Assembly (NCBI RefSeq): GCF_000400465.1
Contig: NW_008806300.1
Span: forward strand, 1-32,000
DNA: 32,000 nt
Direction of reading: 5' to 3'
Source: Wallemia ichthyophaga EXF-994
Lineage: Eukaryota; Fungi; Basidiomycota
How positions within the stretch are numbered: the stretch's first letter is position 1; every line of letters starts with the position of its first letter. A program made the position numbers and the translations under genes. Positions 1-29,798 of this stretch are shown here, in pieces. The notes beneath the pieces are model-generated. The model had not been told where the DNA came from. It did no database searches and saw only the letters and a program-made list of their open reading frames with translations.

Positions 1-56
1 TATTATTTGGTATTTATTTATTTATTTAATATTGTGGGTATGTATTTATATTTACA

Positions 57-140
57 CGGAATAGGCAGGATTCGAACCTACCAAGATTAAAAAATCTAAA
101 CAGATAGCAACTGTTTTACCTTACCGATGGAGACTATTCC
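57..140 (-). tRNA. trnS: tRNA-Ser(GCU)
   Basis: Reverse complement folds as a cloverleaf: acceptor GGAATAG/CTATTCC, anticodon arm AACAG-TT GCT AT-CTGTT, long variable arm, TTCGAAT T-loop. Confidence 0.92.
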
Positions 141-228
141 TTAAATTTAATTATTTCCTTTAATAAAACAGTAATATATAATAAATAAATATAAAACAAT
201 TATATAAAAATCTAAAAAATACTATAAT

Positions 229-237
229 TATAGGTAA
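229..237 (+). promoter_or_regulatory. Putative mitochondrial promoter nonamer TAWAGGTAA (representative copy)
   Basis: Exact copies at +229, +10145, +12876, +16483, +16915, +17820, +27071, +27321 and -16885..16893, -29120..29128, -29732..29740. Each is intergenic and points at the next gene. Resembles the yeast ATATAAGTA promoter. Confidence 0.65.
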
Positions 238-311
238 TAAGTTAAATGATTATCTTTTATTAATAAGATATTCAATGGAAATTCGCAATTATTTTTATAA
301 TAAATATAAAT

Positions 312-1772
312 ATGATTTTAAGTCTAATTTTAATTCCTTTAGTTACATGTTTTTTTATTTCAGTTAATAATGAAAGTGGAACTAATAACAAATCTAATGT
401 ATTTAGTACTAATCCTTTTGTTCTAGCATTAGTAGGAACAGTAATCACATTTGTATTATCATTATACTTATTTGTACAATTTGATAATAGTCATGTAGGT
501 TATCAATTTGTTTCTCAAATTTTTGATACTAGTTTCTGTAGTTTTCATTTTGGTATTGACGGTTTAAGTCTTTATTTTGTATTATTAACTACATTTACTA
601 TGCCTATCTCTATTTTAGCATCATGGACTAATATTAAATTTAAAGCTAAATATTACCTAATTTTATTACTAATTTTAGAATCTTTATTAATTGCTGTTTT
701 CACAGTTAGTGATCTAATTTTATTCTATGTTTTCTTCGAATCAGTACTTATCCCATTATTCCTTATTGTAGGAATCTGGGGAGGTAATAACAGAATTAGA
801 GCATCATTCTTATTATTCTTATACACATTAGGAGGATCACTATTTATGTTATTATCAATTTTAACTATTAATAATAATTTTGGAACAACTGATTTTTCAT
901 ACTTAAGATTACATTCAATTAATTTAGATAGTCAATATATTCTATGGTTAGGTGTATTTATTGGTTTATATATTAAAACACCTTTAATCCCATTTGGACA
1001 TATTTGGTTACCTAGAGCTCACGGTGAAGCACCTGTTGCAGGAAGTATTATTCTTGCCGGATTAATTCTAAAACTTGCAACTTATGGTTATGTAAGAGTA
1101 TTAATTGATTTAATGCCAGAAGCAACAAGTTATTACCAACCTATGATTCAAATGTTAGCTTTAATTACAGTTATTTATGCATCATTCTCATGTATGAGAC
1201 AACAAGATAGTAAAAGTTTTATTGCTATGAGTTCAGTACAACACCAAGGTATTGTTATTTTAGGATTATTTAGTAATAATCTAATTGGTATTGAAGGTGC
1301 TATGTTATTATCAATTGCACATGGATTTGTATCCCCTGGATTATTCATGGTAGTAGGAGGAATTTTATATGATAGATTTCATACTCGTGTACTAAGATAC
1401 TACAGGGGACTTACTCTTTATATGCCAGTTACATCTGCCTTATTCTTTGTATTAACACTAGCAAACTGTGGAGTACCATTATCTCTAAATTGGTTAGGAG
1501 AATCATTATCATTAATGGGTATCTTTGGAAAATCAATGGTTGTAGGTACATTAGCAGCCTCGAGTGTTGTATTAGGAGCAGCATATAGTATCTGGTTATT
1601 CTCAAGAATGAGTTTCGGTACTTATAGTAAATACCTAAGCTATATGAAAGATATTAATAGAAGAGAATTTCACGTATTATTACCATTAATTACTATGACT
1701 CTTTTACTAGGAATTTACCCTAATGTTATTCTTGATAACTTACACGTAAGTGTTACAGGTCTATTATACTAA
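312..1772 (+). CDS. nad4: NADH dehydrogenase subunit 4
   Basis: 486-aa hydrophobic ORF with nad4 motifs FYVFFESVLIP, WLPRAHGEAP, GSIILAGLILKL, AHGFVS. Confidence 0.98.
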   Translation: MILSLILIPLVTCFFISVNNESGTNNKSNVFSTNPFVLALVGTVITFVLSLYLFVQFDNSHVGYQFVSQIFDTSFCSFHFGIDGLSLYFVLLTTFTMPISILASWTNIKFKAKYYLILLLILESLLIAVFTVSDLILFYVFFESVLIPLFLIVGIWGGNNRIRASFLLFLYTLGGSLFMLLSILTINNNFGTTDFSYLRLHSINLDSQYILWLGVFIGLYIKTPLIPFGHIWLPRAHGEAPVAGSIILAGLILKLATYGYVRVLIDLMPEATSYYQPMIQMLALITVIYASFSCMRQQDSKSFIAMSSVQHQGIVILGLFSNNLIGIEGAMLLSIAHGFVSPGLFMVVGGILYDRFHTRVLRYYRGLTLYMPVTSALFFVLTLANCGVPLSLNWLGESLSLMGIFGKSMVVGTLAASSVVLGAAYSIWLFSRMSFGTYSKYLSYMKDINRREFHVLLPLITMTLLLGIYPNVILDNLHVSVTGLLY

Positions 1773-1809
1773 TATAATAACTAATTAACCACTATTATAA
1801 AAATTTAAT

Positions 1810-1818
1810 ACCCCTCCC
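1810..1818 (+). terminator. C-box ACCCCTYC, putative mRNA 3'-end processing signal (representative copy)
   Basis: Also at 9997 (cob), 12799 (rns), 15191 (cox2), 16409 (nad1), 17785 (atp6, ACCCCTT), 27052 (nad3), 28368 (nad6), -29750..29757 (nad5), and inside introns at 5472, 6659, 8029, 14328. Confidence 0.7.
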
Positions 1819-1948
1819 TAATATAATCCAATAACATAACTCTAAAAATAATTTATTATTTCTATTTATAATAAAACTAATACTTTTTTATTCTTATATA
1901 ATAATATATCTAATATATCTAATATATCACTAATATTTTATATATTAT

Positions 1949-1960
1949 TCGTCCATACAT
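1949..1960 (+). promoter_or_regulatory. Dispersed (G)TCGTCYATACAT motif of unknown function (representative copy)
   Basis: Related copies at +1987, +10062, +12842, -16625..16637 and -28557..28569; the last two are identical 13-mers. Confidence 0.5.
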
Positions 1961-2280
1961 TTATTTTAACGTCAATATATACAATATCGTCCTAACATAA
2001 AATTTTATAAGTTAAAACAAACTTAGCATAATCTAATATTATATTAAAATATATATTATAAAGGTAGCTTAATTACGAATTTATTTTATTTTTTTTGAAT
2101 TTCATTTATTATTTTTATTTTTTACTTTTAGGTAATTTTTTTAATTTCTATATGTTATTATTTTTATAATAGCAATTTTTTACGTTGTCATTTAAGTTGT
2201 TGTTTTTACAGCAATAATAGTATAATATTTATCTATTAAATTAGATATCTATATACTATTAGCTATTTTTTATTAAATTT

Positions 2281-2435
2281 ATGCGTTTACTAAAATCACA
2301 TCCATTATTAAGTTTAGTGAATAGTTACGTTGTTGATTCTCCACAACCAGCTAACATTAGTTACATGTGGAATTTTGGATCACTATTAGCAACTTGTCTT
2401 GGTTTACAATTAGTAACAGGTATCATCCTAGCTAT
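2281..2435 (+). pseudogene. cob: Orphan duplicate of cob exon 1, followed by a truncated intron 1
   Basis: [36 protein letters not shown], identical to 4090-4244, but its intron is broken by the fold-back at 3206/3207. Confidence 0.9.
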
Positions 2436-4089
2436 AATTTAGTGTGTAGCTATAAAATATATTCAATAGCTAGATATATATATACAAAGTTTTTAATGGT
2501 ACAATTTTATATTGTTATAATCCGTAAAAATTTGTACAATTAGCTAAATGTGAAACATTTTCAGAGACTATACAATACAATAATATGATATAGTCCGATA
2601 TTATTATATATTTAATAATATAAGTTCACATTATAATAAGAGTGTAGTTTTAGACAATAGTATTCTTCAGTTATTAGTTTTATTTAGTAATTTCGTTCCT
2701 CTCTCATTATTAAATAAAAATTATACAACCAACTCATATAGTAAATCATTTGATGATAAAGGTTGGTTTTTACTGGTTTAACTGATGGCGAAGGATATTT
2801 TACAGCTGATATTAACAAGTCTAATACTACTAAATTAGGATAGGACTAAGATTTGGTTTACTAATGCATATTCGTGATATTGAATTACTACTTTCTTTTT
2901 CTGAATATTTAGGAAATATTGGTTATGTTAGAGCTGATCATAATAGAAACCAGGCAGTGTTTAATGTTAGTTCTATTCAAGAACTAGTAATGGTTATTAA
3001 CCATTTTAACAGATATCCATTAGTTACATCTAAATTTCTAGCTTTTTATACTTTTAAATTAATTCATAATATTATTATCACTAAGCAGCATCTAAGTGTA
3101 TCTGGTTTTGTTTTAGTATGTTCTTATATTAACATTTTAAATAAACCGTTATATCCAAAAAACTTGGTGAATTAACTAATGCTTTTGGTTGTTTATATGA
3201 TGTTGTACAACATCATATAAACAACCAAAAGCATTAGTTAATTCACCAAGTTTTTTGGATATAACGGTTTATTTAAAATGTTAATATAAGAACATACTAA
3301 AACAAAACCAGATACACTTAGATGCTGCTTAGTGATAATAATATTATGAATTAATTTAAAAGTATAAAAAGCTAGAAATTTAGATGTAACTAATGGATAT
3401 CTGTTAAAATGGTTAATAACCATTACTAGTTCTTGAATAGAACTAACATTAAACACTGCCTGGTTTCTATTATGATCAGCTCTAACATAACCAATATTTC
3501 CTAAATATTCAGAAAAAGAAAGTAGTAATTCAATATCACGAATATGCATTAGTAAACCAAATCTTAGTCCTATCCTAATTTAGTAGTAACTAATTAACCA
3601 CTATTATAAAAATTTAATACCCCTCCCTAATATAATCCAATAACATAACTCTAAAAATAATTTATTATTTCTATTTATAATAAAACTAATACTTTTTTAT
3701 TCTTATATAATAATATATCTAATATATCTAATATATCACTAATATTTTATATATTATTCGTCCATACATTTATTTTAACGTCAATATATACAATATCGTC
3801 CTAACATAAAATTTTATAAGTTAAAACAAACTTAGCATAATCTAATATTATATTAAAATATATATTATAAAGGTAGCTTAATTACGAATTTATTTTATTT
3901 TTTTTGAATTTCATTTATTATTTTTATTTTTTACTTTTAGGTAATTTTTTTAATTTCTATATGTTATTATTTTTATAATAGCAATTTTTTACGTTGTCAT
4001 TTAAGTTGTTGTTTTTACAGCAATAATAGTATAATATTTATCTATTAAATTAGATATCTATATACTATTAGCTATTTTTTATTAAATTT

Positions 4090-4244
4090 ATGCGTTTACT
4101 AAAATCACATCCATTATTAAGTTTAGTGAATAGTTACGTTGTTGATTCTCCACAACCAGCTAACATTAGTTACATGTGGAATTTTGGATCACTATTAGCA
4201 ACTTGTCTTGGTTTACAATTAGTAACAGGTATCATCCTAGCTAT
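4090..4244 (+). CDS. cob: Apocytochrome b exon 1
   Basis: Cob N-terminus ending CTA GCT AT; joins G CAC TAC at 5518 to give AMHY. Confidence 0.95.
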
Positions 4245-5517
4245 AATTTAGTGTGTAGCTATAAAATATATTCAATAGCTAGATATATATATACAAAGTT
4301 TTTAATGGTACAATTTTATATTGTTATAATCCGTAAAAATTTGTACAATTAGCTAAATGTGAAACATTTTCAGAGACTATACAATACAATAATATGATAT
4401 AGTCCGATATTATTATATATTTAATAATATAAGTTCACATTATAATAAGAGTGTAGTTTTAGACAATAGTATTCTTCAGTTATTAGTTTTATTTAGTAAT
4501 TTCGTTCCTCTCTCATTATTAAATAAAAATTATACAACCAACTCATATAGTAAATCATTTGATGATAAAGGTTGGTTTTTACTGGTTTAACTGATGGCGA
4601 AGGATATTTTACAGCTGATATTAACAAGTCTAATACTACTAAATTAGGATAGGACTAAGATTTGGTTTACTAATGCATATTCGTGATATTGAATTACTAC
4701 TTTCTTTTTCTGAATATTTAGGAAATATTGGTTATGTTAGAGCTGATCATAATAGAAACCAGGCAGTGTTTAATGTTAGTTCTATTCAAGAACTAGTAAT
4801 GGTTATTAACCATTTTAACAGATATCCATTAGTTACATCTAAATTTCTAGCTTTTTATACTTTTAAATTAATTCATAATATTATTATCACTAAGCAGCAT
4901 CTAAGTGTATCTGGTTTTGTTTTAGTATGTTCTTATATTAACATTTTAAATAAACCGTTATATCCAAAAAACTTGGTGAATTAACTAATGCTTTTGGTTG
5001 TTTATATGATGTTGTACAACATCATATATCTTAGGTAAAGTAAATCCATTCTGGCTTCTTTGTAGGTGAAGGTTGTCTTACTTTTCGTAAACAATATAGA
5101 CCTCGGGTGTTAATTATGATATTTGGTTGATGGCTGAAATTGGTCAATTAACTAAAGACTTATATGTTTTAGAAGCTATTCGTGACCTATTAGGATTTGG
5201 TAAAATTTACCATGAAAATAAACGTGGCTTATCTAAAATTAGATTTGATTCATCAGAATCATTAACATCTTTTATCCAGTTTTTACATGAATATCCTCTA
5301 ACAGGATTCAAACGTAAACAATTTGGATTAAAGCATTCAAATTAATTACGGAAATGCCTAAATCTGTTGAAAGAGAAGCATTACTTTTGGATATTCTGGG
5401 TCAATTGTCAGGTCTTACTAAGTCTTAAATTTTACTTAGAATTATTATTATTATCTTTATTAATTTTTAATACCCCTTACTTATCATTTATCCTATCTTA
5501 TTATAATAGAACTAATG
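4245..5517 (+). mobile_element. cob intron 1, group I (after cob nt 155)
   Basis: Exon ends in U, intron ends in G; P1 GTAGCT pairs exon AGCTAT; P10 TAGTGT pairs GCACTA; core TTCAGAGACTA and GATATAGTCC near the 5' end. Confidence 0.92.
4570..5428 (+). pseudogene. Degenerate two-motif LAGLIDADG endonuclease in cob intron 1
   Basis: Motifs FTGLTDGEGYF (about 4578) and SGFFVGEGCLTF (about 5050) lie in frames broken by several frameshifts and stops; start approximate. Confidence 0.85.
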
Positions 5518-5755
5518 GCACTACACACCTAACGTAGACTTAGCATTCATTAGTGTAGAGCATATTATGAGAGATGTTAACTACGGTTGGTTACTAAGAT
5601 ACATGCATGCTAATGGTGCTTCTTTCTTCTTCATTTTTGTATACTTACACATTGGAAGAGGATTATACTACGGATCATACAGAGCTCCTAGAACACTTGT
5701 ATGGAGTATTGGAGTAATTATCTTCATCCTTATGATGGCTACAGCCTTCTTGGGT
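5518..5755 (+). CDS. cob: Apocytochrome b exon 2
   Basis: [10 protein letters not shown]...[16 protein letters not shown]...MATAFLG; cumulative length 393 nt. Confidence 0.96.
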
Positions 5756-6615
5756 TTAACAAATATTAGCCCAACATGTCAATTAATGGTCATTACTATG
5801 GTATATTTAGTTCTGTTATCTAACTACTTTTCAAACACTAATATTACGGATTCTGGTTTGGTAAAACTATTAAATAATTTTAACTTAAAACCTGTAATTG
5901 TTATTGATAATCTACAGGAATTATCTACTAAAGTTATGGCACCTAAACTATTAAGAGACCTAGGTGGTATTTATTTAATTTATAATAAAATCACTGGTGA
6001 AAAATATGTCGGAAGTGCTATTGTAGGTAATTTATACAAAAGATTTTATAAACATTTATATGGTGGGCAAGGAAATAGACTAGTCAAAGAGGCTGTAGAT
6101 CAACATGGTCTATAAAACTTTGTATTCATGCAACTAAAATCAGTTGATGCTGATCCTCTTAGTGGAGAAACAGATAAACATTTCTTACTAGAAAATTATT
6201 TTTTAGAATTATTTAAACCGGAATATAATATTGCAACATTATCTCAAAATACATACGGATATCATCACACAGAAGAAACAAAACAAAAAATGCGTGATAA
6301 TTATTCTAATGAGAGAAGAGAACAAATTGGTTCATTAAACAGAGGTAAAAATTTATCTGATGAAACAAGAGAAAAAGTAAGACAAGCTGCTTAGGGCCTA
6401 TGTCTGAAGAACATAAACAAAAATCTATTTCAAATGAAAGACCTCTTTTAATTACTGATATTTCTGATACATCTTTCTCAAAAGCTATCTTTATGAGTAA
6501 CATTCTTGTTGCTGCTAATCATATTGGTTGCGATGATAAAACTATCAGAAGAGCTCTTAAAGCAAATGGTGTTGTTAAGAAACAGTGGTTAGTTAAGGAT
6601 TATTTACATTGTTAG
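5756..6615 (+). pseudogene. GIY-YIG endonuclease fused to cob exon 2, interrupted
   Basis: [19 protein letters not shown] and YNI/HTEETKQKM NUMOD-like repeats; in-frame TAA at 6113-6115 and a frameshift near 6392. Confidence 0.88.
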
Positions 6616-7001
6616 CTGTTTTTGGCATAGTCATAGTTTTTATTATATAAATTTCAAAACCCCTCTAAGCAACTTACACAAGAAAATTAGAGTGTATAAC
6701 TAAAAACTATTAATACTTACAAAGTATTGAATCGTTTACATATATTTACGATTTGGCGATACTAGTGAATACGGTTAAAGATAAAAGTTATTTATCCAGA
6801 CCGTCGGTTTTGTGTAAAATCGCTACAGACTGGGTCACTAGTAGGTGTCTGAAATGACGCTTAATGTACAGTCGAGTTTCCGCATATTATATATATATGT
6901 TCAAGGCCCAGAATGACGTTTATTTATGTTAATAGCATGATTTACTGACTGGGTACAACTACTACTAATAATAACTTAAAATATTGGTAGAAGGGAAATT
7001 G
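5756..7001 (+). mobile_element. cob intron 2, group ID-type (cob393 site)
   Basis: IGS GCCCAA pairs exon TTGGGT; core GCTACAGACTGG and ATGTACAGTCG; terminal G at 7001. Confidence 0.93.
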
Positions 7002-7104
7002 TATGTTCTTCCTTATGGGCAGATGTCTCTATGGGGTGCTACAGTAATTACTAACTTACTTAGTGCGATCCCTTGGCTAGGAAGCCCATTAGTAGAATTC
7101 GTTT
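7002..7104 (+). CDS. cob: Apocytochrome b exon 3
   Basis: [34 protein letters not shown]; the 3' boundary may be off by 1 nt. Confidence 0.92.
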
Positions 7105-8003
7105 CAAATTTTATTTACTTTGACTTATTTAGTTTTACTATTCTTTTATTTTCCTTAATTGGAACTCACAGACTTAAAAGAAAATTAGTAGATTCTAGAG
7201 TTAAAGAATTATTAAGTATTTCACCAAAATTCTTAGCATTATTTGCTGGATTTGTAGATGGTGATGGTTATATTGCTACTATCCAAAGACGTGGTTATGT
7301 AGAGTGTTATTTAGCTATCGAGGTAGGTATTGTTGATATGTCAACTTTAAACTATTTCAGAGAAGTTTTAGGTGTTGGTAAAGTTAAACATGTTCAAAGA
7401 GCTTCAAGAAATGATACTGCTTTGTACACTGTTAATTTAACTGATTTAATTAATACTATTGTTCCTCTATTTGTTTACCATCAGATTACTTTTTTAACTT
7501 CTACAAGACGTCATCAATATAACAGACTATTATATGTTATTGAAAATGGTATCAAAAATTACGATGATTTACCAGAAAATCCTCCTATTTCTCAATACTT
7601 ATTTCTTAATGAAATTGTTCCTTCAAACTATTTAGCTATTTCATTCTTTGATAGTTGGATTGTTGGGTTTATTATGGCAGATGGTAGTTTCAGTTACACA
7701 GAAAACATGAAATCAGCAAATTTCTCCATTAAACAAAGAACTCAACAAGGTTTATTGGAAGCTATTCTATTAAGATTAGGTTCTTCACGTAATTTAACTA
7801 TTATTCCGGAAATCGGTAATTGGCAAGAAAGACAATTACTTATGGTTTCATCAATTACAGATATTCAGGCTGTTATTAATTTCTTTTCATTCTCGGACGT
7901 TCACCCTCTTATTGGAGACAAAGCCGAATCTTACAAAAGATGGCTGATTGCTCTAAGGGATAGTAGTCGTTATGGAAGTTTAAATTTCCCACCTATTGAC
8001 TAA
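7105..8003 (+). CDS. Intact two-motif LAGLIDADG endonuclease/maturase in frame with cob exon 3
   Basis: FAGFVDGDG and [10 protein letters not shown] motifs, uninterrupted to TAA at 8003. Confidence 0.92.
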
Positions 8004-8222
8004 TTTTTATAACCTTATAATACCTTATACCCCTCCCGGAACGAATTATAAACTATTATATGCTAGAAATAAATTATGAATTATATAGTACATTAAGATG
8101 TAATAATCTATATAAAATTATAACTAGCAAATTTATTATAAATTTCAAAGAATATACATGTTTTCATTTAAAATGAATGAGATATTCTATTCTTGCATTA
8201 TATTATAACTTGCAAGACAATG
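7105..8222 (+). mobile_element. cob intron 3, group I (after about cob nt 496)
   Basis: Splicing GTT T to GG GGA GGC restores VWGGF; core TATGCTAG, CTAGCA, CAAAGAATA and GATATTCT lie after the ORF. Confidence 0.85.
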
Positions 8223-8482
8223 GGGGAGGCTTTAGTGTTAATAATGCTACTCTAAATAGATTCTTCAGTCTTCACTACTTATTACCATTTGTATTAGCCG
8301 CATTAGCAATTATGCATATGATGGCATTACATACACACGGTTCATCAAACCCAACAGGTGTAAGTGCTAACAGTGACAGATTAGCAATGCACCCATACTT
8401 CACGTTCAAAGACTTAGTGACTATTTTTCTATTCTTCTTAGTATTCTCACTATTTGTATTCTACGCACCTAATAAACTAGGT
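8223..8482 (+). CDS. cob: Apocytochrome b exon 4
   Basis: [22 protein letters not shown]...APNKLG; cumulative length 756 nt. Confidence 0.95.
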
Positions 8483-9355
8483 TTTATCGGCCTAAATAAC
8501 AATAATGTTATTGATATCAATTTTACTAAAATTATGGAACTAGTATTACTACTCTTAGTTTTTACTAAACCATATGGAATTCCCAATTCCTCAGAGACTT
8601 TACTTAAAAGTACTTCTTTAATTTCTAAAGATCCATATCCTGATAGTAGTCAATTTTATTTTTGGCTAGCTGGTTTAATTGATGGTGATGGTTATTTAGG
8701 TGTATATAGTAATGGAACACCATCAGGTGAGATCACCCTTGGTGAACATGATTTATCTACTTTAGAATATATTAGAAACAAAATCGGTGGAAATCTTGGT
8801 AAACGTACAGGTAAAAGAGCCTGGCGTTGGAGATCTTCAGCTAAAAGAGTATTATTACCCTTGGTTCAAAATCTAAACGGTAAACTACTTTTAAGTTCTA
8901 AACATGATCAATTAATCACTTTATTCTCACACTTTAATCTTCCAAATCCTATTACAAATAATTTATTGTCTTCTAACACAGCTTGGTTATCAGGATTTTT
9001 TGATGCTGAAGGATACCTATCTATTAGAAATATCAGTACTTTAACCTTAAGTATTGGTCAAAAAGATAGAAATATTCTTCAAAATATTGTCGATGTGTTC
9101 AAAGTAGGTACTATCTACCATGACATTTCAAGTGATACTTATAATTATGTAATTACAGACTAAAATAGCCTGTTGGTGCTAATTAATTATTTTGACAAAT
9201 ATCCATTATTAACTTCTAAATCATCGGATCTAGAAATGATCAAGAAACTTGCACTAATGAAAGTTAATAAAGAGCACTTACAAAAACACCCTTGCCATGA
9301 TTATTTTTATCAATTAGTGCAGGAATTCAAAGACAGGAACAAAACAAAGTCCTAA
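8483..9355 (+). pseudogene. LAGLIDADG maturase/endonuclease with a single in-frame TAA
   Basis: [10 protein letters not shown] and [10 protein letters not shown] motifs; TAA at 9161-9163, then the same frame continues to 9355. Confidence 0.85.
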
Positions 9356-9385
9356 ATCAAAATAAATAATTATTTTGATTTACAG
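8483..9385 (+). mobile_element. cob intron 4, group I (after cob nt 756)
   Basis: IGS GCCTA pairs exon TAGGT; P7 CAGAGACTT (about 8592) with AAGTCC (about 9347); terminal G at 9385. Confidence 0.9.
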
Positions 9386-9449
9386 CACCCTGACAACTAC
9401 ATCCCAGCTAACCCTATGAGTACACCAGCATCAATTGTACCTGAATGGT
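9386..9449 (+). CDS. cob: Apocytochrome b exon 5
   Basis: [21 protein letters not shown]. Confidence 0.96.
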
Positions 9450-9634
9450 AAATCTAACGTAATAAAAAATTTATGTGCCATTCTAAAACTAAAATATATG
9501 CTAGAACTGTTAAATGTTTTGTACTAATAATATGTAAGAATCAAAACTATAGAGCAGTATCAGCAAATTTATCAATTTCAGAGACTATAATAAAATTTAG
9601 TCCTTTATAAACTTATTTAAAGTTTAATATTTTG
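9450..9634 (+). mobile_element. cob intron 5, 185-nt ORF-less group I intron
   Basis: P1 GCCATTC (9477-9483) pairs exon GAATGGT with U.G at the splice site; TTCAGAGACTA and TTTAGTCC core; terminal G. Confidence 0.93.
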
Positions 9635-9969
9635 ACCTATTACCATTCTATGCTATTCTAAGATCTATCCCGAACAAATTGTTAGGAGTGCTAGCAATGT
9701 TTGGTTCTCTGCTAATCTTATTGGCAATGCCTATTTTAGATACTTCTAGAGTTAGAGGTGCTCAGTTTAGACCATTCATGAGAATTGCTTTCTGGTTATT
9801 TGTAGCTAACCTACTTATCTTGGGATTCATCGGGGGAGAACACCCTGAAGACCCATACATCGGAGTAGGAGCTGCAAGTACAGCCTTTTATTTCGGATGG
9901 TTCTTATTCATCGTGCCTGCGATTGGTGTGTTAGAAAACACATTAGCTGATCTAGGAAGTAACAAATAA
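9635..9969 (+). CDS. cob: Apocytochrome b exon 6
   Basis: [19 protein letters not shown]...; the spliced CDS is 1155 nt (384 aa), in frame. Confidence 0.96.
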
Positions 9970-10208
9970 TATTTATAACCCTTTAAAACTTTTAATACCC
10001 CTCCCTGAATTATAATTATAAATTATAAAATTAAACCAATAATTACATATTTTTTTTAATGGTCATCCATACATTATATAATTAAGTAATAAAAAAATTA
10101 GTAAAAAAGTGTATATTTATGAAATAATATAAATTATCAAAAAATATAGGTAATATTGAAGAGTAATTTATTTACTTAAGAAGATTATTAAGGATATTAA
10201 TAATTGAG

Positions 10209-11333
10209 TTATTTGTATGAGTTTAAGCTTGGCTCAGCTTGAATACTATCTAATAGCTAGACATGCGAGTCGTACGAGGATAATATATAAATTATTCTAG
10301 TGGCGTGAAGGTGAGTAATGGTATAATTAGGACACCTAGACCCGTCTTAAATGGATGATAAGGGGAATTTTATTTTTATAGGATTCTTTGAAAGGGTTGT
10401 ACTTGGTTTAGGTTCTGTTATATTCTAAGTAGCTAGTTGGTAGGGTAACTGCTTACCAAGGCTATGATTAGTAGTCAGTCTGAAAGGATGTATGGCCACA
10501 GTGGGTAATAAACCCATCATGTTATATTTAGCATGCAGCAGTCGGTAAAATTGGTCAATGCTTGAAAAAGTGAACCAGCTAATTAGATTACGTATAATCA
10601 TCGTATACGTAGTAGGATATATTCATAATGAGAATCTATATCTGAGTAGTCCTTGACAATTCTGGTGCCAGCATCAGCGGTAATACCAGAAGGGCGAGTA
10701 TCAAGCATAATAAATAGGCGTAAAGGGATCGCAGACGGTTTTAATATTTCTTATATTTAGGAAACTTATTGAAACTAGAATCTAATGGGTGTTTTGAGCA
10801 CGTTGGGAGTAGGGGTAAAATCCGTTGAGACTCAAAAGACTACTAAAAGCGAAAGCACAAAACAATTAAAGATTGACGTTGAGGATCGAAAGCATGGGTA
10901 GCAAAAGAGATTAGAGACCTCTGATAGTCCATGCCGTAAACGATGTCTGTTCATATGTAGCAATTTTTCCGCTATATATTTAGTTAGCACATTAAACAGA
11001 CCGCCTGAACAGTACATTCCCAAGAATGAAAATCAAAAGTTTTAACCGCAGGCTAGTACACGGGGTGAAGCATGTTATTTAATTCGATAACCCGCGTATA
11101 ACCTTACTATCTCTTGTATATTTAGATTTTTATCTATTTACAGGTGTTGCATGGTTGTCGTCAGTTCGTGCTTAATAGTGTTTGGTTAAGTCCGCTAACG
11201 AACGCAATCCTTATGTTTAATTTATACATAAACAATGATTAGATTAACATCTAATTTTAAAGGAGTATGACTAATCATCATGACCCTTATGAGATAGGCT
11301 ATAGACGTGCCACAAAATTAATAACAATATCAT
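10209..11333 (+). rRNA. rns: Truncated 5' copy of small-subunit rRNA (1125-bp tandem duplicate)
   Basis: Matches 11334-12458; lacks the 3' domains; true 5' end approximate. Confidence 0.88.
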
Positions 11334-12787
11334 TTATTTGTATGAGTTTAAGCTTGGCTCAGCTTGAATACTATCTAATAGCTAGACATGCGAGTCGTAC
11401 GAGGATAATATATAAATTATTCTAGTGGCGTGAAGGTGAGTAATGGTATAATTAGGACACCTAGACCCGTCTTAAATGGATGATAAGGGGAATTTTATTT
11501 TTATAGGATTCTTTGAAAGGGTTGTACTTGGTTTAGGTTCTGTTATATTCTAAGTAGCTAGTTGGTAGGGTAACTGCTTACCAAGGCTATGATTAGTAGT
11601 CAGTCTGAAAGGATGTATGGCCACAGTGGGTAATAAACCCATCATGTTATATTTAGCATGCAGCAGTCGGTAAAATTGGTCAATGCTTGAAAAAGTGAAC
11701 CAGCTAATTAGATTACGTATAATCATCGTATACGTAGTAGGATATATTCATAATGAGAATCTATATCTGAGTAGTCCTTGACAATTCTGGTGCCAGCATC
11801 AGCGGTAATACCAGAAGGGCGAGTATCAAGCATAATAAATAGGCGTAAAGGGATCGCAGACGGTTTTAATATTTCTTATATTTAGGAAACTTATTGAAAC
11901 TAGAATCTAATGGGTGTTTTGAGCACGTTGGGAGTAGGGGTAAAATCCGTTGAGACTCAAAAGACTACTAAAAGCGAAAGCACAAAACAATTAAAGATTG
12001 ACGTTGAGGATCGAAAGCATGGGTAGCAAAAGAGATTAGAGACCTCTGATAGTCCATGCCGTAAACGATGTCTGTTCATATGTAGCAATTTTTCCGCTAT
12101 ATATTTAGTTAGCACATTAAACAGACCGCCTGAACAGTACATTCCCAAGAATGAAAATCAAAAGTTTTAACCGCAGGCTAGTACACGGGGTGAAGCATGT
12201 TATTTAATTCGATAACCCGCGTATAACCTTACTATCTCTTGTATATTTAGATTTTTATCTATTTACAGGTGTTGCATGGTTGTCGTCAGTTCGTGCTTAA
12301 TAGTGTTTGGTTAAGTCCGCTAACGAACGCAATCCTTATGTTTAATTTATACATAAACAATGATTAGATTAACATCTAATTTTAAAGGAGTATGACTAAT
12401 CATCATGACCCTTATGAGATAGGCTATAGACGTGCCACAAAATTAATAACAATATCATAGCAAATTTATATTTTTTAATAGGAAAAAAGAGCTAATGATC
12501 AAATATTAATGAGTATGAATTATATGCTGCAATTCGCATATATGAAATAGGAATCCCGAGTAATCGTTTATCAGGATCGGAACGGTGAAACGAACTCTAG
12601 CCTGGGCATAAACCGCTCGTCACAAGCGTTAAGATGATTTATAATGAATATAAATAAAAACCTCAAATAATTTAAGATTTTAAAAAAGTCTTATTTTATT
12701 AAGGATAATCAGTTTGTAGAGTTGTGATCATCAAGATGCTTGAAGTCGAAACTGGTCACGGTAGGGGAACCTGCCGTGGTATCATTA
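11334..12787 (+). rRNA. rns: Mitochondrial small-subunit rRNA
   Basis: TTGGCTCAG, GTGCCAGCATCAGCGGTAATAC, GCATGGTTGTCGTCAG, ACCGCTCGTCAC, GAAGTCGAAAC...GGGGAACCTGC; ends approximate. Confidence 0.95.
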
Positions 12788-12907
12788 AAATTAATTAAAC
12801 CCCTTCAATATTATTATTAATTTTTAATTTTATATAAACAAGTCGTTCCTACATTAATTTATTTTATTTCAATATTATAGGTAACAAATAATTTTTTCTA
12901 CTTTATT

Positions 12908-12978
12908 AAGACGGTAGCTGAGTGGTTTAGCGTGCACTTTACACGTGTGATACAAGAGTTCGAATCTCTTTCGTCTTA
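12908..12978 (+). tRNA. trnV: tRNA-Val(UAC)
   Basis: Acceptor AAGACGG/TCGTCTT; anticodon loop TT TAC AC. Confidence 0.93.
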
Positions 12979-13148
12979 TTATTTAACAATGCCCATCATT
13001 ATTATAATGTGATTTTTTACTATTAAATTAGTAATTATTTCAGATTGCTATAAAAGCATTATATGATTGATCCTATTATTAGGGCACTTATATTATTTTT
13101 AAATTTTATTTTTAATTGATTATAAGTGTGATTTGTATTTAAAAGATT

Positions 13149-13472
13149 ATGAATTTTCTTTTAAACTGGTTAGTTCCCGTGTATAATGATGCCCCTGAAC
13201 CATGGAAATTATCTTTCCAAGATGGAGCAAGTCCTACATTTGAAGGAATTACCGAATTACATGATACCATTTTCTTCTACCTAGTTGTTATTGGTGTAGG
13301 AGTTTTCTGGATCATGGGAGTTACAATGATTAACTTCAGTGAATCAAAATCACAAATTGTTTACAAACACTTTAACCACGGTACTCTTATCGAGTTAGTT
13401 TGGACAATTACACCTGCATTTATCTTAATTGCTATCGCATTCCCTAGCTTCAAATTACTATATCTTATGGAT
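13149..13472 (+). CDS. cox2: Cytochrome c oxidase subunit 2 exon 1
   Basis: DAPEPW..FQD, ELVWTITPA, PSFKLLYLMD. Confidence 0.96.
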
Positions 13473-14294
13473 TCTATTACTAGAACGATTTTTAACACTA
13501 TTATGTCTAAATCAATCGTTTTATTTAAATCTACTGTTCAATCATTTTCAATAGCTATTGAAAGAGCTAAACCGATTTTCATTAAAAATATCACTACACC
13601 TTGTACCGCTATTGTACCATATGGTGTTATGGGGAATTCTAATGGAATCAAATTAAGTCAATATGCTAGAGATATTACTGTACTAACTGAAACTATGCGT
13701 GATCAAATTATTGGTCACATCTTGGGAGATGGTTCACTAACTAAATCATATACTTCTAAGAATGCATACTTTGTTTTCACACAGACATCTAAGCGTTTTT
13801 TCTATATTATGCATATTTTTTCAATTTTAGGTCCACTTTGCCTAAAATTACCAACATTAGGTTGTAGTTTACGTAAAGGAATTAGAAGTTACTATCTTCA
13901 AATTCACTCACGTAGTTACCCATTTTTTAGTAATCTGTACAATTTATTTTACTTCGATGGTATTAATCCAAATCCCGTAAAAAGAATTCCTACAGATCTT
14001 CTATTTTACTTAAACCCTAATGTTCTGGCAGTATGGTGCATGGATGATGGAAATTTCTCTCCAAGCGGTTTCTATCTTCACACTAATAATTTTAGTTTTA
14101 ATGATGTATATAAATTAGCTGCTATGCTTCACTATGTTTTTGAATTAACTGTGAATGTTCAAAGATTTGATGGAAAACCTGTTCTTTATGTTCCAGCTAA
14201 GCAATTACCTAAATTTTATGCTTTAGTTAAGCCTTATATTTTGCCTGAGTTTGCCTACAAGTTTAGACACCAAGTATTGACACAGTATGATTAA
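13473..14294 (+). CDS. Intact LAGLIDADG endonuclease (I-SceI-like type) in frame with cox2 exon 1
   Basis: IIGHILGDGSL and LAVWCMDDG motifs, uninterrupted. Confidence 0.9.
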   Translation, partial: SITRTIFNTIMSKSIVLFKSTVQSFSIAIERAKPIFIKNITTPCTAIVPYGVMGNSNGIKLSQYARDITVLTETMRDQIIGHILGDGSLTKSYTSKNAYFVFTQTSKRFFYIMHIFSILGPLCLKLPTLGCSLRKGIRSYYLQIHSRSYPFFSNLYNLFYFDGINPNPVKRIPTDLLFYLNPNVLAVWCMDDGNFSPSGFYLHTNNFSFNDVYKLAAMLHYVFELTVNVQRFDGKPVLYVPAKQLPKFYALVKPYILPEFAYKFRHQVLTQYD

Positions 14295-14556
14295 TACCGA
14301 GTCCCACTTTTATATTAAATTTATAATACCCCTTCCTATTTTTACAGTATTACAAATTTATAAAGTGAAACACATTTTACGAAGCTAAGATCGTTTTTAA
14401 GTTATTTAGTACTAGTATAATAGTGATAACCTAAATAATTACGTATCAGCTGTATTAAAAATATTTTCAGAGACTATAGCATATTGAATATTTTATTAAT
14501 ATTAAAATATAGTCCTTTTTTCAATATTTTAACTCTAAAAGTTTTGAAAATATTAG
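13473..14556 (+). mobile_element. cox2 intron 1, group I (after cox2 nt 324)
   Basis: Splicing GAT to GAG GTA ATT restores MDEVISP; core TTCAGAGACTA and AATATAGTCC after the ORF. Confidence 0.92.
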
Positions 14557-14838
14557 GAGGTAATTTCACCATCTATGACAATCAAGGTTAACGGTGCTCA
14601 GTGGTACTGGTCTTACGAGTACTCTGATTACTTGAATGAAGAAGGAGAATCCCTGGAATTCGATAGTTACATGGTACCTGAATCTGATTTAGAATTAGGT
14701 CAATTAAGACTACTTGATGTTGACGCACCAGTTGTAGTACCTGTTGATACTCATATCAGATTTATTGTTACAGCTAATGACGTTATCCATGACTTTGCTG
14801 TTCCATCTCTAGGATTAAAAATCGATGCAACACCCGGT
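14557..14838 (+). CDS. cox2: Cytochrome c oxidase subunit 2 exon 2
   Basis: [35 protein letters not shown]. Confidence 0.96.
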
Positions 14839-15012
14839 TAATAAACGGCCGGTTAAAAATTTACTAAAATGCTAATACGTTACTAATAATATGATTATTA
14901 CTTTAAAAAAGTAAAAATATAATCATTTATCTAATTAGCAAATATTTTTTATATTTCAGAGGCTATTTTAAGAAATAGTCCATTTAAATTATCAAATAAT
15001 TTATAAAATTTG
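14839..15012 (+). mobile_element. cox2 intron 2, 174-nt ORF-less group I intron
   Basis: P1 GCCGG pairs exon CCGGT; P10 TAAACG pairs CGTTTA; P7 GGCTA/TAGTC; ATGCTAAT/ATTAGCA pairing; terminal G. Confidence 0.92.
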
Positions 15013-15165
15013 CGTTTAAATCAAACTTCGGTATTAATCCAGAGAGAAGGTACTTACTATGGACAATGTAGTGAAATTTGTGGAGCTTACCACGCATTTA
15101 TGCCTATCCAAATTCAGGCGGTATCACTAGATAAGTATTTAAGCTGGTTAGATAGCCAATTCTAG
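15013..15165 (+). CDS. cox2: Cytochrome c oxidase subunit 2 exon 3
   Basis: RLNQ...[18 protein letters not shown] CuA motif, ends TAG; spliced CDS 759 nt. Confidence 0.96.
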
Positions 15166-15389
15166 ATTTACCTATTATTAAAATTATTAAACCCCTTCCA
15201 AAATAGGAATATATACACAATTATATTCTTAGTTGATTTTATCAAATTGAAAACACTTTACAGTGTGTACCTTATAGTCTAATTTAACTTTTATATTATA
15301 TATAATTATAGTTAATCTTAGACGTTTTTACTAAAATATATAATAAATTTATATATTTTATGTAGTTTATATTAAGTTATTTTTATAAA

Positions 15390-16376
15390 ATGTTTACATT
15401 ATTAAACCTTGTTGAAATTCTTATTGTATTAGTTCCTGTTCTTCTAGCTGTTGCTTTTATGACTATTTTAGAAAGAAAAGTTATGGGTAGCATGCAAAGA
15501 AGAGTTGGTCCAAATAGAGTAGGATACTATGGTGTTCTACAGCCGTTCGCCGATGCCCTTAAATTAGTAGTTAAAGAAAATGTTATTCCATCACACTCAG
15601 CTAAAACATTATTCTTCCTTGCTCCTATTATTGTTTTATTAACTAGTTTATTAGGATGGGGAGTTATGCCTTTTGGTACCGGATTAGTTATTGGAGATTA
15701 TCCATTAGGATTATACTTTACATTAGCAATTGGTGCTTTAGGTATTTATGGTGTATTATTAGCTGGATGGAGTGCTAACTCTAAATATGCATTCATTGGA
15801 TCATTAAGATCTACAGCTCAGTTAATTAGTTACGAATTAGTATTCAGTTCATGTTTACTAGCAGTATTATTCTTATGTGGTACATTAAATTACACTAGAA
15901 TGATCGAAACACAACAAGCTGTATGGTTTATTTTCCCATTATTACCATTATTTGTTATGTACTTTATTTCAGTATTAGCAGAAACTAACAGAACACCTTT
16001 TGATCTTGTAGAAGCCGAATCTGAACTTGTTAGTGGATTTATGACAGAACACGGATCTCTTGTATTCGTATTCTTCTTCCTAGGAGAATACTCATCTATT
16101 GTAGGTATGTCAGCGCTAACAGCATATATGTTCTTAGGAGGATATAATATGCCCGAATTATTTGTAAATGATACTATGATCAATATTCAAGGATTTATTC
16201 TTGGACTTAAAACATGTATTTCTTGTATTCTATTCGTATGGTTCAGAGCATCTCTACCTAGATTAAGATATGACCAATTAATGGTATTCTGTTGGTGTAA
16301 TATGTTACCATTAGCTATTGCTATTATCATGTTAATTCCAAGTATCTTATTAGCATTCGATATTATGCCATACTAA
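15390..16376 (+). CDS. nad1: NADH dehydrogenase subunit 1
   Basis: ERKVMGSMQRRVGPN, QPFADALKL, AETNRTPFDLVEAESELVSGF, PRLRYDQLM. Confidence 0.98.
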   Translation: MFTLLNLVEILIVLVPVLLAVAFMTILERKVMGSMQRRVGPNRVGYYGVLQPFADALKLVVKENVIPSHSAKTLFFLAPIIVLLTSLLGWGVMPFGTGLVIGDYPLGLYFTLAIGALGIYGVLLAGWSANSKYAFIGSLRSTAQLISYELVFSSCLLAVLFLCGTLNYTRMIETQQAVWFIFPLLPLFVMYFISVLAETNRTPFDLVEAESELVSGFMTEHGSLVFVFFFLGEYSSIVGMSALTAYMFLGGYNMPELFVNDTMINIQGFILGLKTCISCILFVWFRASLPRLRYDQLMVFCWCNMLPLAIAIIMLIPSILLAFDIMPY

Positions 16377-16492
16377 TAACTAAATTAACCCTTTTATATA
16401 AATTTAATACCCCTTCAGAATCATAATAACTATAATAACCATAATAAAGGTATTATAAAATTTTATTTTTTATATAATTAGTTATAGGTAAT

Positions 16493-16576
16493 GCGAGTAT
16501 GCTGTAATTGGTAGCCAGGTGATCGTTAAGTGATCAAGGTAATAATACCGTGCCGGTTCGAGTCCGGCTGCTCGTA
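16493..16576 (+). tRNA. trnL: tRNA-Leu(UAA)
   Basis: Acceptor GCGAGTA/TGCTCGT; anticodon arm TGATC-GT TAA GT-GATCA; long variable arm. Confidence 0.9.
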
Positions 16577-16767
16577 ATAAAATATTAGTAAACTCACATT
16601 ATTTTATAATTAAATAATAATAATATGTATAGACGACTTAATTTAAATAATAACATGTATAAATAACTAAACTACAATATACATAATTTATATGGTGATA
16701 TTTATATTTAATATTAATAATTAAATATATTTTTTGTTATAGATTATAATATTTAATATTTATGATA

Positions 16768-16839
16768 TGATCCGGAAAGGAATTGAACCTAATACCTTAC
16801 AGTTATCGGCTGTACGTTCTACCATTAAACTACCAGATC
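16768..16839 (-). tRNA. trnI: tRNA-Ile(GAU)
   Basis: Acceptor GATCTGG/CCGGATC; anticodon arm TACAG-CC GAT AA-CTGTA. Confidence 0.88.
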
Positions 16840-16962
16840 TTATATAATTACGATAATCGAAAAATTTAGCAAATAATCAATAATTTACCTTTAGAAAAAA
16901 TAAAAAATAAAAATTAAAGGTAAAAGTTAAAGTTTGAATTTTATAATAATTTATTAATAAAT

Positions 16963-17730
16963 ATGCACAACTTATTTATGATCAACTCTCCATTAGAGCA
17001 ATTCGGTGTTGTCAGTCTATTGGAGTTTAGACTACCATTTAATGGTACAGTTTTAAGTTTAACTAACTTAGGACTATATTCTATCATCATTGTTGTTTTA
17101 ATCTTAGGTGGACATTTTCTATCTACTAACAACAAAGGTCTAGTAAGTAGCCCATGGTCTCTTACATTTGAAAGCCTATATACTACTCTACAATCAATGG
17201 TTAAAGACCAAATTGGATCAAGATACGAATCATACTTACCTTTTGTATACGGATTATTTATTTTCATCCTAGTTGCTAACGTTAATGGTAACATCCCTTA
17301 CGGATTTACTATTACTACATCTGCTATTGTTTCATTAGGATTCAGTTGTATGATTTTCTCATCTGTTACTATTCTTGGATTATTCAGACATGGTATCCAC
17401 TTCTTCAGTTACTTTGTTCCTGCTGGTACACCATTAGCATTAGTACCATTACTAGTATTAATCGAATTAATTTCATACTTTGCTAGAGCTGTATCATTAG
17501 GAGTACGTCTATTTGCTAACATGGTAGCTGGACATATTTTACTAAAAATTCTAGCATCATTCTTATTTGGACTATTTAACTCATCATTATTAGTAGCTAC
17601 ATTAACTCTAATCCCATTTGCATTATTTGTTGCATTAATTGGACTAGAATTAGCAGTAAGTGTTATCCAAGCATACGTATTCACTATTTTAACTTGTTCT
17701 TACATTAAAGATGCTCTAGATCTTCACTAG
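16963..17730 (+). CDS. atp6: ATP synthase subunit a
   Basis: SPLEQF, RAVSLGVRLFANMVAGH, ELAVSVIQAYVF. Confidence 0.98.
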   Translation: MHNLFMINSPLEQFGVVSLLEFRLPFNGTVLSLTNLGLYSIIIVVLILGGHFLSTNNKGLVSSPWSLTFESLYTTLQSMVKDQIGSRYESYLPFVYGLFIFILVANVNGNIPYGFTITTSAIVSLGFSCMIFSSVTILGLFRHGIHFFSYFVPAGTPLALVPLLVLIELISYFARAVSLGVRLFANMVAGHILLKILASFLFGLFNSSLLVATLTLIPFALFVALIGLELAVSVIQAYVFTILTCSYIKDALDLH

Positions 17731-17882
17731 TTAAATAATAGTAATATTATACTAATATATAATAACCCTTTTATAATTAATTAAACCCCTTTTTATATAA
17801 TATATAATTATTAGATAATTAAAGGTAATCTGGTTATTTAATTTTTTTAAGTTATTTTATTTAACACTTATATTCTACCAAG

Positions 17883-17953
17883 GCATGTGTCGTATAATGG
17901 CAATATAGTGGTCTTCCATATCATTGACGTGGGTTCGATTCCCACCACATGTA
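17883..17953 (+). tRNA. trnG: tRNA-Gly(UCC)
   Basis: Acceptor GCATGTG/CACATGT; loop CT TCC AT. Confidence 0.92.
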
Positions 17954-18029
17954 TTTTTTGTAATATAAATTAATTCTATTATTATTTTAAAAAATTTAAT
18001 TAATTATTTTACATTGTGACTTTTTAGTA

Positions 18030-19221
18030 ATGCTATTATTAGCTTTAATTATTTTAGTTGTTGTTTTAGCAACAAGTTCCTCAGAAAACAGATCTACTGT
18101 TTCATTTGTTTACAATCCGGTTAAATTAATTGTATTATCATTAATTTTATCAATTGTATTAATTATTTCCGCTATTTCATCTTGCCCATTAGATTTAACA
18201 GTTTCTCTCTTTAGTGGACTATATCAAACATCATATGTAACATTAGCATTTGATTTACTATTATTTGTTAGTTCAGCATTAGTTTTAACATCATGGCCTC
18301 AATTTAAATCGAATAAATACTTATCTCATTTTAATAATTTTAAAATGAACGATTATAGTCTTATTGTTTTATTTTCTATTATTGGTGGATCATTCTTATT
18401 AGCTTCTAATGATTTAATTAGTTTATACTTAGCTCTTGAATTACAATCATTTGGTGTTTATGTTCTTACTACATTATATAGAGACTCAGAATCTGCTACT
18501 TCTGGTGGTATGAAATACTTCTTTTTAGGAGCTCTTTCTTCAGCCTTAATTTTATTAGGGTCAGCTATTTTATATACTTATTTAGGATTAACACAATTCG
18601 AATCTATTTATATTTTAGCAAGTGTTCCTACTAATACTATCGATCAAATTGGACTAAATTTTGGTTTATTACTTATTCTTATTGGATTATTATTTAAAGT
18701 TGCAGCTGCACCATTCCATTCATATGCTCCAGATGTATATGACGGAGCACCAACTCAAGTAACAATTTGGTTAACAACTATTCCAAAACTAAGTTTATTT
18801 GGTTTATTATTAGTTCTACAACCATTAGGTACATTATTAAGTAGTTCAGTAGAATTATTTAATTTAGTTCCATGGACAGATTTATTATTATTATCTACAT
18901 TATTATCATTTATTGTCGGAAGTGTTATTGGTTTAGGTCAATATAGAATTAAAAGATTACTTGCTTATAGTACTATTGGACATGTCGGATTTATTTTATT
19001 AGGTCTAGCAAGTCATAGTACACAATCATTAGAATCAACATTCTTTTACTTAGGTCAATATACATTCACTACTATTAATGTATTCCTTATCTTAATTGCA
19101 TTTGGTATTGCTATTAATGGTAAAAAATCTAATACTAATTATGATATTCAATTTATTAAAGATTTAACAGGACAATTCCTACATAACCCAGCATTAAGTT
19201 TAAGTTTAAGTTTATGTTTAT
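18030..19221 (+). pseudogene. nad2: 3'-truncated nad2 copy 1, cut by the fold-back junction
   Basis: Matches the first 397 codons of 25117-26637. Confidence 0.92.
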
Positions 19222-20444: not shown

Positions 20445-20520
20445 TACTAAAAAGTCACAATGTAAAATAATTAATTAAATTTTTTAAAATAATAATAGAA
20501 TTAATTTATATTACAAAAAA

Positions 20521-20591
20521 TACATGTGGTGGGAATCGAACCCACGTCAATGATATGGAAGACCACTATATTGCCATTATACGACACATGC
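20521..20591 (-). tRNA. trnG: tRNA-Gly(UCC), inverted copy
   Basis: Reverse complement of 17883-17953. Confidence 0.9.
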
Positions 20592-20743
20592 CTTGGTAGA
20601 ATATAAGTGTTAAATAAAATAACTTAAAAAAATTAAATAACCAGATTACCTTTAATTATCTAATAATTATATATTATATAAAAAGGGGTTTAATTAATTA
20701 TAAAAGGGTTATTATATATTAGTATAATATTACTATTATTTAA

Positions 20744-27023: not shown

Positions 27024-27139
27024 TATACTATTTATATCAATAATTTTTAATACCCCTCCCTACATAAGATTATAGGTAATTCAATATATTTTTAAGTATA
27101 TGTATAAAATTGGCTTATTTTTATAATTTATCTATAATA

Positions 27140-28340: not shown

Positions 28341-28655
28341 GACACAATTATAAAATAAAATTATTAAACCCCTCCCAAATGTATATTATAATATAATAAA
28401 ATTTTATACAATTTATTTATATTATCCATTCATAAAATATAAAATAAAAATCTACTAAATAAAAATAAAATAAAGTATATATTATTAGAATTAATATGAA
28501 ATAGATAATAGTAAAATATATGTGTAATATAGTTTTATTTTTGTAATAATAATAATATGTATAGACGACAATCAAATTAATAAGTAATAATTTTATAAGT
28601 AATATATAATATGTAATATTTAGTATATAGTATATAATATATAGTATTAATATAA

Positions 28656-29701: not shown

Positions 29702-29798
29702 CTTAATATACCAAAACAAATACTAATTATATTACCTTTAATTTACTATGAAGGGGTTTAATAATTTTATTAATAATAATATTTCTATGTTAAATCAA

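Follow-up and report, generated by a model that had tools for sequence, protein, structure and literature searches.

A host C-rich element, a probable RNA 3'-end signal, behind endonuclease genes in mitochondrial introns of Wallemia ichthyophaga

How an endonuclease or maturase gene that lies inside an intron is expressed from within its host gene is understood in a few yeast cases only. The same question is raised by a 32,000-nucleotide (nt) stretch of AT-rich mitochondrial DNA (mtDNA) of the basidiomycete Wallemia ichthyophaga EXF-994 (contig NW_008806300.1, positions 1 to 32,000 of the forward strand; hereafter the window), which carries nad4, cob, rns, cox2, nad1, atp6, nad2, nad3, nad6, nad5 and many tRNA genes. 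A preliminary description of this DNA reported that a short C-rich element found behind the host genes, here called the C-box, also follows the endonuclease open reading frames (ORFs) of four introns, three in cob (i1, i2 and i3) and one in cox2 (i1). The intronic element is indeed that of the host genes, with the core, strand, spacing and AT-rich left flank in common, and the coordinates and spacings given earlier for the four intronic copies are exact. They are most likely functional versions of the element that marks mitochondrial RNA 3' ends in the host, which is of the C-rich type known as the C-core.

The box was defined as the 9-mer AWACCCCTY, and its spacing as the distance from the last base of the stop codon to the A preceding the C-run. 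The window contains 18 matches to this motif, where 0.93 +/- 0.91 are expected and at most 4 were found in 100 dinucleotide shuffles. Once the internal duplications of the window are collapsed, 13 unique sites are left, nine of which lie 3' of host genes (nad4, cob, rns, cox2, nad1, atp6, nad3, nad6 and nad5) and four in the introns named above, with C-runs beginning at 5473, 6660, 8030 and 14329 (Table 1). The window holds no match beyond these sites, and its other CCCC runs, which fall within coding, rRNA or tRNA sequence, are not preceded by AWA. Further host boxes, behind cox1, atp8 and cox3, are supplied by L105, a 28-kb contig of assembly GCA_004918755.1 (with W. ichthyophaga protein labels) that is 99.5-99.9% identical to the window. 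In the two sequences together, 12 host genes or units have a run of at least four C on the sense strand 24-55 nt past the stop, and the intronic spacings of 26-44 nt, taken by the same measure, fall within this host range. The rns box is found 8 nt past the Rfam-defined end of the gene, and the nad2-nad3 pair has one common box at the end of nad3, as expected for co-transcribed genes. The AT-rich left flank extends the consensus to AAATTT(T)AAWACCCCTYC in host and intronic boxes, and the cob i1 box is identical over 17 nt to the host boxes of nad3 and cox1. Predicted RNA accessibility of the box gave no consistent hairpin or unpaired signature in either the host or the intron copies. A weaker upstream element, (T)AACCC(T)TT, was observed ~20 nt 5' of the box after cob (9975-9985), nad1 (16385-16395) and atp6 (17760-17770), with a variant after nad4 (1785-1795); in cob i3, AACCTTAT (8010-8020) stands at the same distance 5' of the box. 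This upstream element is poorly conserved in the sister species described below.

The exon-intron borders of cob were set by requiring a complete COB translation. The resulting exons (4090-4244, 5518-5755, 7002-7104, 8223-8482, 9386-9449 and 9635-9969) splice into a coding sequence for the full COB protein, 99% identical to the W. ichthyophaga assembly protein P0121, and the borders are of the group I kind, with each exon upstream of an intron ending in T (U in the RNA) and all five introns ending in G. Because an Rfam scan of positions 1-17000 returned no Intron_gpI match at E<=1, the ribozyme cores were sought by their R/S motifs and by homology. Canonical R/S (P7) pairs were located in cob i1, cob i5, cox2 i1 and cox2 i2. 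At the level of the encoded proteins, Pfam domains above the curated cut-off assign the ORFs of cob i1, i3, i4 and the cox1 intron iA to LAGLIDADG_1, those of cox2 i1 and the cox1 introns iB and iC to LAGLIDADG_2, and that of cob i2, by its intact copy in strain L015, to GIY-YIG with NUMOD3. The earlier characterization of the box-bearing introns as unrelated is therefore roughly right for their ORFs, which come from three Pfam families; at the level of the ribozymes, however, cob i1, cob i5, cox2 i1 and cox2 i2 have the same R/S core type.

As had been described, the box precedes the ribozyme core in cob i2, cob i3 and cox2 i1. The core of cob i2 (~6755-6960) starts ~95 nt 3' of the box, a placement which follows from the homology of the sequence from ~6755 onward to the core of an ORF-less cox1 intron; that of cob i3 was placed by comparison with 80 orthologues, in whose family the conserved core comes after the ORF. 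The core of the cob i2 intron is 85-90% identical to the cox1 core in the same genome (L105 12940-13130), which suggests a recent intron transposition between cob and cox1. Several of the ORFs are damaged. The LAGLIDADG_1 ORF of cob i1 is degenerate, with pieces at 4673-4984 and 5127-5345 and a C-terminal frame ending at 5426-5428. The window copy of the cob i2 ORF contains in-frame stops at 6113-6115 and 6392-6394 and is intact in L015 (351 aa, 1773-2828), and the cob i4 ORF is broken in the window at 9161-9163 and intact in strains L007 and L008 (392 aa; L007 6927-8105). Since further strains of the species retain both in intact form, the cob i2 and i4 ORFs appear to be decaying or polymorphic, with the boxes unchanged. 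The exceptions that had been named also hold. The cob i4 ORF ends at the R/S-like core, its stop lying just past the R/S-like P7 pair and 30 nt before the 3' splice site, which leaves no room for a box, and the ORF-less cob i5 and cox2 i2 are without a box or any sense-strand CCCC.

The remainder of the mtDNA, as represented by L105, extends this comparison to cox1 and cox3. The ORF of cox1 iA is fused to the upstream exon and is followed by a box 26 nt past its stop (L105 10905) and then by the R/S core. In cox1 iB a free-standing LAGLIDADG_2 ORF stops ~45 nt before the splice site, and no box is present. The frameshifted LAGLIDADG_2 ORF of cox1 iC is followed at L105 14190-14210 by AAATTTTTAATACCCAAATT (decayed copy AATACCCAAA), which is the cox1 host-box sequence with its C-run cut to three and may be either a decayed box or a proto-box. 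In the window and L105 combined, a box is thus found behind five of the eight ORF-bearing introns, with a decayed copy in a sixth, and in none of at least ten ORF-less introns (one-sided Fisher test, 0.0065). In the two remaining ORF-bearing introns, cob i4 and cox1 iB, which have no box, the ORF ends 30-45 nt from the 3' splice site. No sense-strand CCCC occurs in the ORF-less cox1 mini-introns (at least six), in one in cox3 or in a polymorphic 153-nt intron of cob exon 3, and the ORF-less cox1 paralogue of the cob i2 ribozyme has no box at the aligned site. The association of the box with the presence of an ORF is supported by these counts. The 153-nt group I mini-intron (L007 5635-5787) is present in L007, L015 and the sister species and is missing from the window, where its site falls between 7037 and 7038; it carries no box. 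In addition, cox1 apparently has two micro-exons of ~27 and ~40 nt (L105 9770-9795 and 9969-10008) that are split by mini group I introns.

A natural control is provided by the sister species represented by contig L021, whose genes are 87-93% identical to those of the window. Host boxes are found in L021 after nad4, cob, rns, cox2, nad1, atp6 and nad3. This contig lacks cob i1, i2 and i4, and at the cob i3 site and in the place of cox2 i1 it has short ORF-less introns clearly homologous to those of the window. In both of these ORF-less homologues the flanks of the box position align and the C-run is missing: for cox2 i1, the window reads TTTATAATACCCCTTCCTATTTTTACAGTATTA and L021 reads ATTAATAC..TTTATTATTTTTATATTTTATAGTATTA, and for cob i3, the window reads AACCTTATAATACCTTATACCCCTCCCGG and L021 reads AACCTTATAATTAAAACTTATAAC..TAAG. 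The boundary between ORF presence and absence lies 12-25 nt 5' of the box in both introns; since it is 5' of the box and both box flanks align, the box is not simply part of the inserted ORF block. Small local changes in place, and not the insertion of the ORF, appear to account for the gain (or decay) of the boxes. The sole ORF-bearing cox1 intron of L021 has a box 26 nt past its stop.

The Wallemia introns belong to the widespread fungal group I introns of cob, cox1 and cox2 with LAGLIDADG or GIY-YIG ORFs, and share insertion sites and ORFs with orthologues in other hosts. For the cob i3 ORF alone, homologues joined to cytochrome b exon sequence number in the thousands, that of the Neurospora cob gene (P0119) among them, with identities of no more than 46%. 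A set of 80 cob-i3-type ORF loci from metagenomes and three cox1-iA-type loci was compared. About ten of the 80 cob-i3-type loci have any CCCC within 90 nt past the stop, and the full AWACCCCTY is present in one (L087), whose close relatives have CCC or nothing there; in most of the 80, the stop leads directly into the conserved core GGGCTCCTTGAAACAGTAATG...GGCAAATGGGGAG. A box is likewise missing behind the three orthologues from outside Wallemia that are closest to the cox1 iA ORF (L111, L110 and L106, with 67, 63 and 58% identity). The comparison of orthologous introns called for in the preliminary description thus shows that the box goes with the host rather than with the lineage of the intron, being absent from 79 of 80 cob-i3-type and 3 of 3 cox1-iA-type loci, and because the non-Wallemia orthologues are without it, the box belongs to Wallemia rather than to the intron families. 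It is a host 3' signal that introns gained within the Wallemia lineage and that accompanies an ORF; selfish intron genes seem to have adopted the signal that marks the ends of host mRNAs.

Precedents for this arrangement are known. In Schizosaccharomyces pombe, the C-core lies near the 3' ends of all mRNAs and of rns, these ends being heterogeneous and located a few nt 3' of the C run, and the exonuclease Rpm1/Par1 and the helicase Rpm2/Pah1 have been implicated there (PMC6097661); a C-rich motif has also been reported in Basidiomycota (PMC6097661, PMC3185421). The Wallemia box resembles the C-core, reported in S. pombe, Basidiomycota and basal fungi, in having at least four C on the sense strand after protein genes and rns, and differs in the added AT-rich left flank. 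In Saccharomyces cerevisiae, the mRNA 3'-end element is an AU-rich dodecamer, which also follows the intronic SCEI ORF and occurs in a deviant form at the end of BI3 (PMC3797045), so that the yeast omega precedent invoked earlier is real. The dodecamer is bound by Rmd9, which pauses the exonuclease (PMC11789488), and processing at the dodecamer is needed for I-SceI expression, as indicated by PMC11789488 and by the title of a paper by Zhu et al. (1989) that PMC3797045 cites. As in omega/I-SceI, the host's own mRNA 3'-end element stands in Wallemia at the end of an intron endonuclease or maturase ORF. In contrast to yeast, the element is a C-run, and the binding factor probably differs too; moreover, the yeast examples comprise one free-standing ORF in an rRNA intron and one deviant case, whereas in Wallemia the introns concerned number five or six and are spread over three protein genes, mostly with ORFs fused to the upstream exon and with the box 5' of the core. 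A free-standing ORF with its own start codon is not part of the Wallemia case, this being a trait of the omega example and not of the mechanism. The Wallemia case is therefore a wider and more systematic counterpart of the yeast omega/bI3 dodecamer that uses a C-core-type signal. No account of a C-core motif behind intron ORFs was found in the literature covered, which did not extend to key primary papers on the C-rich motif, so that an earlier mention may exist.

The intronic boxes probably serve the intron ORFs as elements of 3'-end formation or of RNA stability. We infer that RNAs end at the boxes, that a factor binds there and that ORF expression may be affected. A box at 26-44 nt past the stop of an intron endonuclease or maturase would give the ORF-carrying RNA a defined and protected 3' end. 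The factor that marks host mRNA ends would likely bind the box and either halt a 3'-5' exonuclease or direct cleavage, and the product would be a stable, translatable RNA, consisting of upstream exons, ORF and box for the in-frame ORFs and of the 5' part of the intron, ORF and box for cob i1. Such RNAs could stem from cleavage of the precursor, or from trimming of the excised intron or of precursors without a 3' part, and the DNA by itself cannot separate precursor cleavage from trimming as their source. In its simpler form, which follows the inference drawn for the S. pombe C-core (PMC6097661), the box could be a roadblock to 3'-5' exonucleases that protects excised introns or 3'-truncated precursors. 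Among the 100%-identity matches, no transcript-like contigs were found in which upstream introns are spliced and an ORF intron is kept.

Several observations weigh against a role of the boxes as 3'-end elements. The ORFs of cob i4 and cox1 iB, which are capable of being intact, manage without a box, so the box is not essential, and a perfect box is kept behind the degenerate ORF of cob i1, showing that a box can outlive its ORF. Between the two Wallemia species the cox1-iA box is no more conserved than its region, which is 89% identical, and the comparison is therefore uninformative. An orphan match, GATACCCCTTA, is found at L105 17655-17663, in a spacer rich in tRNAs where no ORF can be recognised upstream of it. 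Finally, in low-GC contigs resembling Mortierella, TTTACCCCCCTAT follows cob and usually nothing comparable follows the intron ORFs. The generalization that all hosts with a C-box place it behind intron ORFs was rejected, as the C-run of cob in the Mortierella-like contigs is mostly unmatched there. In one of these contigs (L068 2221-2275), a GIY-YIG ORF orthologous to that of cob i2 is followed by GTTCCCCTTG 46 nt past its stop; the related contig L029 has nothing at this place, and the L068 case may be a sporadic parallel. A further L105 match to the box motif, at 18000, is antisense to a tRNA.

In a stronger mechanism, along the lines of the switch proposed in the preliminary description, the unspliced precursor would be cut endonucleolytically at the direction of the box, and cleavage and splicing would be mutually exclusive and compete kinetically, thereby metering endonuclease or maturase against host mRNA. 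The order of ORF, box and core in cob i2, cob i3, cox2 i1 and cox1 iA agrees with such a switch, as does the order of ORF, box and 3' splice site in cob i1; in-frame ORFs need translation from unspliced RNA, and an endonucleolytic model has been argued for the yeast dodecamer (PMC11789488). However, the S. pombe data favor exonucleolytic trimming with heterogeneous ends and require neither cleavage nor a switch (PMC6097661). Exclusion of one process by the other is also not guaranteed, since a folded group I RNA remains able to splice after a nick in one of its peripheral loops, and in the window the boxes persist behind the broken ORFs of cob i1 and i2. A switch of this kind is accordingly a plausible but tentative proposal that we consider unlikely. 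Its evolutionary counterpart is similarly doubtful, namely that in five or more group I introns the endonuclease genes, drawn from three families, each evolved the host signal in place between ORF and core, with endonuclease mRNA and splicing as alternative fates of the precursor. If true, the switch would amount to a built-in kinetic balance between the expression of a selfish gene and that of its host gene.

Homing endonuclease genes move independently of their introns, and the boxes could accordingly be functionless hitch-hikers or relics, brought along with the 3' untranslated region of once free-standing endonuclease cassettes or copied or converted from host 3' untranslated regions. The 17 nt common to the cob i1 box and those of nad3 and cox1 are in line with this idea, and so is the survival of a perfect box behind the degenerate cob i1 ORF. 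It is rendered improbable by the boundary of the ORF 5' of the box in cox2 i1 and cob i3, where both box flanks align with the ORF-less homologue, by the host-like spacing found behind five independent ORFs from three protein families, and by the lack of the box in non-Wallemia orthologues. The prospects are poorer still for a service to the host, with the intronic box acting as an entry or stop point in the turnover of long excised introns, or as a barrier to the entry of ribosomes or exonucleases into the core. Such a role would account for the confinement of the box to long, ORF-bearing introns and for its position just 5' of the core in four of them, but the spacing follows the stop codon, as in host genes, and not any core element, and cob i4 and cox1 iB are long introns without a box; we regard it as highly improbable. 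Chance or base composition, which short motifs in an AT-rich genome and the one orphan match in L105 might bring to mind, is scarcely credible given the excess of matches over expectation, the position of all four intronic matches 26-44 nt past terminal stops and the absence of matches from ORF-less introns.

With the boxes taken as 3'-end or stability elements, Wallemia offers repeated, lineage-specific adoption of a host 3' signal together with natural controls in the form of ORF-less homologues and orthologues in other hosts. It is thus a simple system in which to ask if RNA ends can be defined by C-core elements alone, if processing and splicing compete, and how fast mobile genes adapt to the RNA processing of their host. 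The box is also a practical annotation marker for the real ends of ORFs in basidiomycete mitochondrial introns.

Table 1. Introns of cob and cox2, intronic C-boxes and host C-boxes in the window
Feature	Position	Strand	Remarks
cob intron 1, group I	4245..5517	+	R/S (P7) 4370-4405, 5' of ORF
C-box in cob i1, ATACCCCTT	5470..5478	+	44 nt past remnant stop, 40 nt before 3' splice site
cob intron 2	5756..7001	+	GIY-YIG/NUMOD3 ORF 5756-6615 in frame with exon 2
C-box in cob i2, AAACCCCTC	6657..6665	+	44 nt past stop 6613-6615
cob intron 3	7105..8222	+	LAGLIDADG_1 ORF in frame with exon 3, to 8003; core ~8060-8222, 3' of box
C-box in cob i3, ATACCCCTC, then CC	8027..8035	+	26 nt past stop 8001-8003
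cob intron 4, no box	8483..9385	+	LAGLIDADG_1 ORF spans R/S-like core, stop 9353-9355
cob intron 5, ORF-less mini group I, no box	9450..9634	+	R/S 9578-9603
cox2 intron 1	13473..14556	+	LAGLIDADG_2 ORF in frame with exon 1, to 14294; then box; R/S core 14467-14515
C-box in cox2 i1, ATACCCCTT	14326..14334	+	34 nt past stop 14292-14294
cox2 intron 2, ORF-less mini, no box	14839..15010	+	R/S 14956-14981
Host C-box after nad4	1808..1816	+	duplicate copy 3617-3625
Host C-box after cob	9995..10003	+	28 nt past stop
Host C-box at rns 3' end	12797..12805	+	
Host C-box after cox2	15189..15197	+	
Host C-box after nad1	16407..16415	+	
Host C-box after atp6	17783..17791	+	repeats 22295, 24870, 20683(-) in duplicated segments of the window
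Host C-box after nad3 (end of nad2-nad3)	27050..27058	+	
Host C-box after nad6	28366..28374	+	
Host C-box after nad5	29751..29759	-	duplicate 31680-31688

All four intronic boxes lie in the part of the window that is collinear with other assemblies of the same mtDNA. The window is non-collinear with these assemblies at 3194-3588, 10209-12458, 16135-24851 and 29726-32000. Part of cob i1 is folded back as an inverted copy, after which the sequence restarts at the nad4 3' untranslated region; a 1.1-kb segment is tandemly duplicated within rns, atp6-trnG-nad2 is repeated in direct and inverted orientation, and a block of nad5 and tRNA genes recurs. This arrangement has the look of rearranged concatemers, or of a chimera that arose in long reads or in assembly. 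At the junction of the fold-back (3158-3255) the sequence is perfectly palindromic and gives rise to spurious Rfam matches to microRNA precursors on both strands. An intron segment identical to that of the window recurs in a W. mellicola-labelled assembly (L109). In two W. ichthyophaga-labelled assemblies (L107 and L108), a 1.17-kb contig carries a fully intronless cob with homologous flanks and ends before the box; this cob is 99% identical to that of the window in protein and ~88% in DNA, and could represent a second mitochondrial lineage of Wallemia, a copy in the nucleus or cross-contamination.

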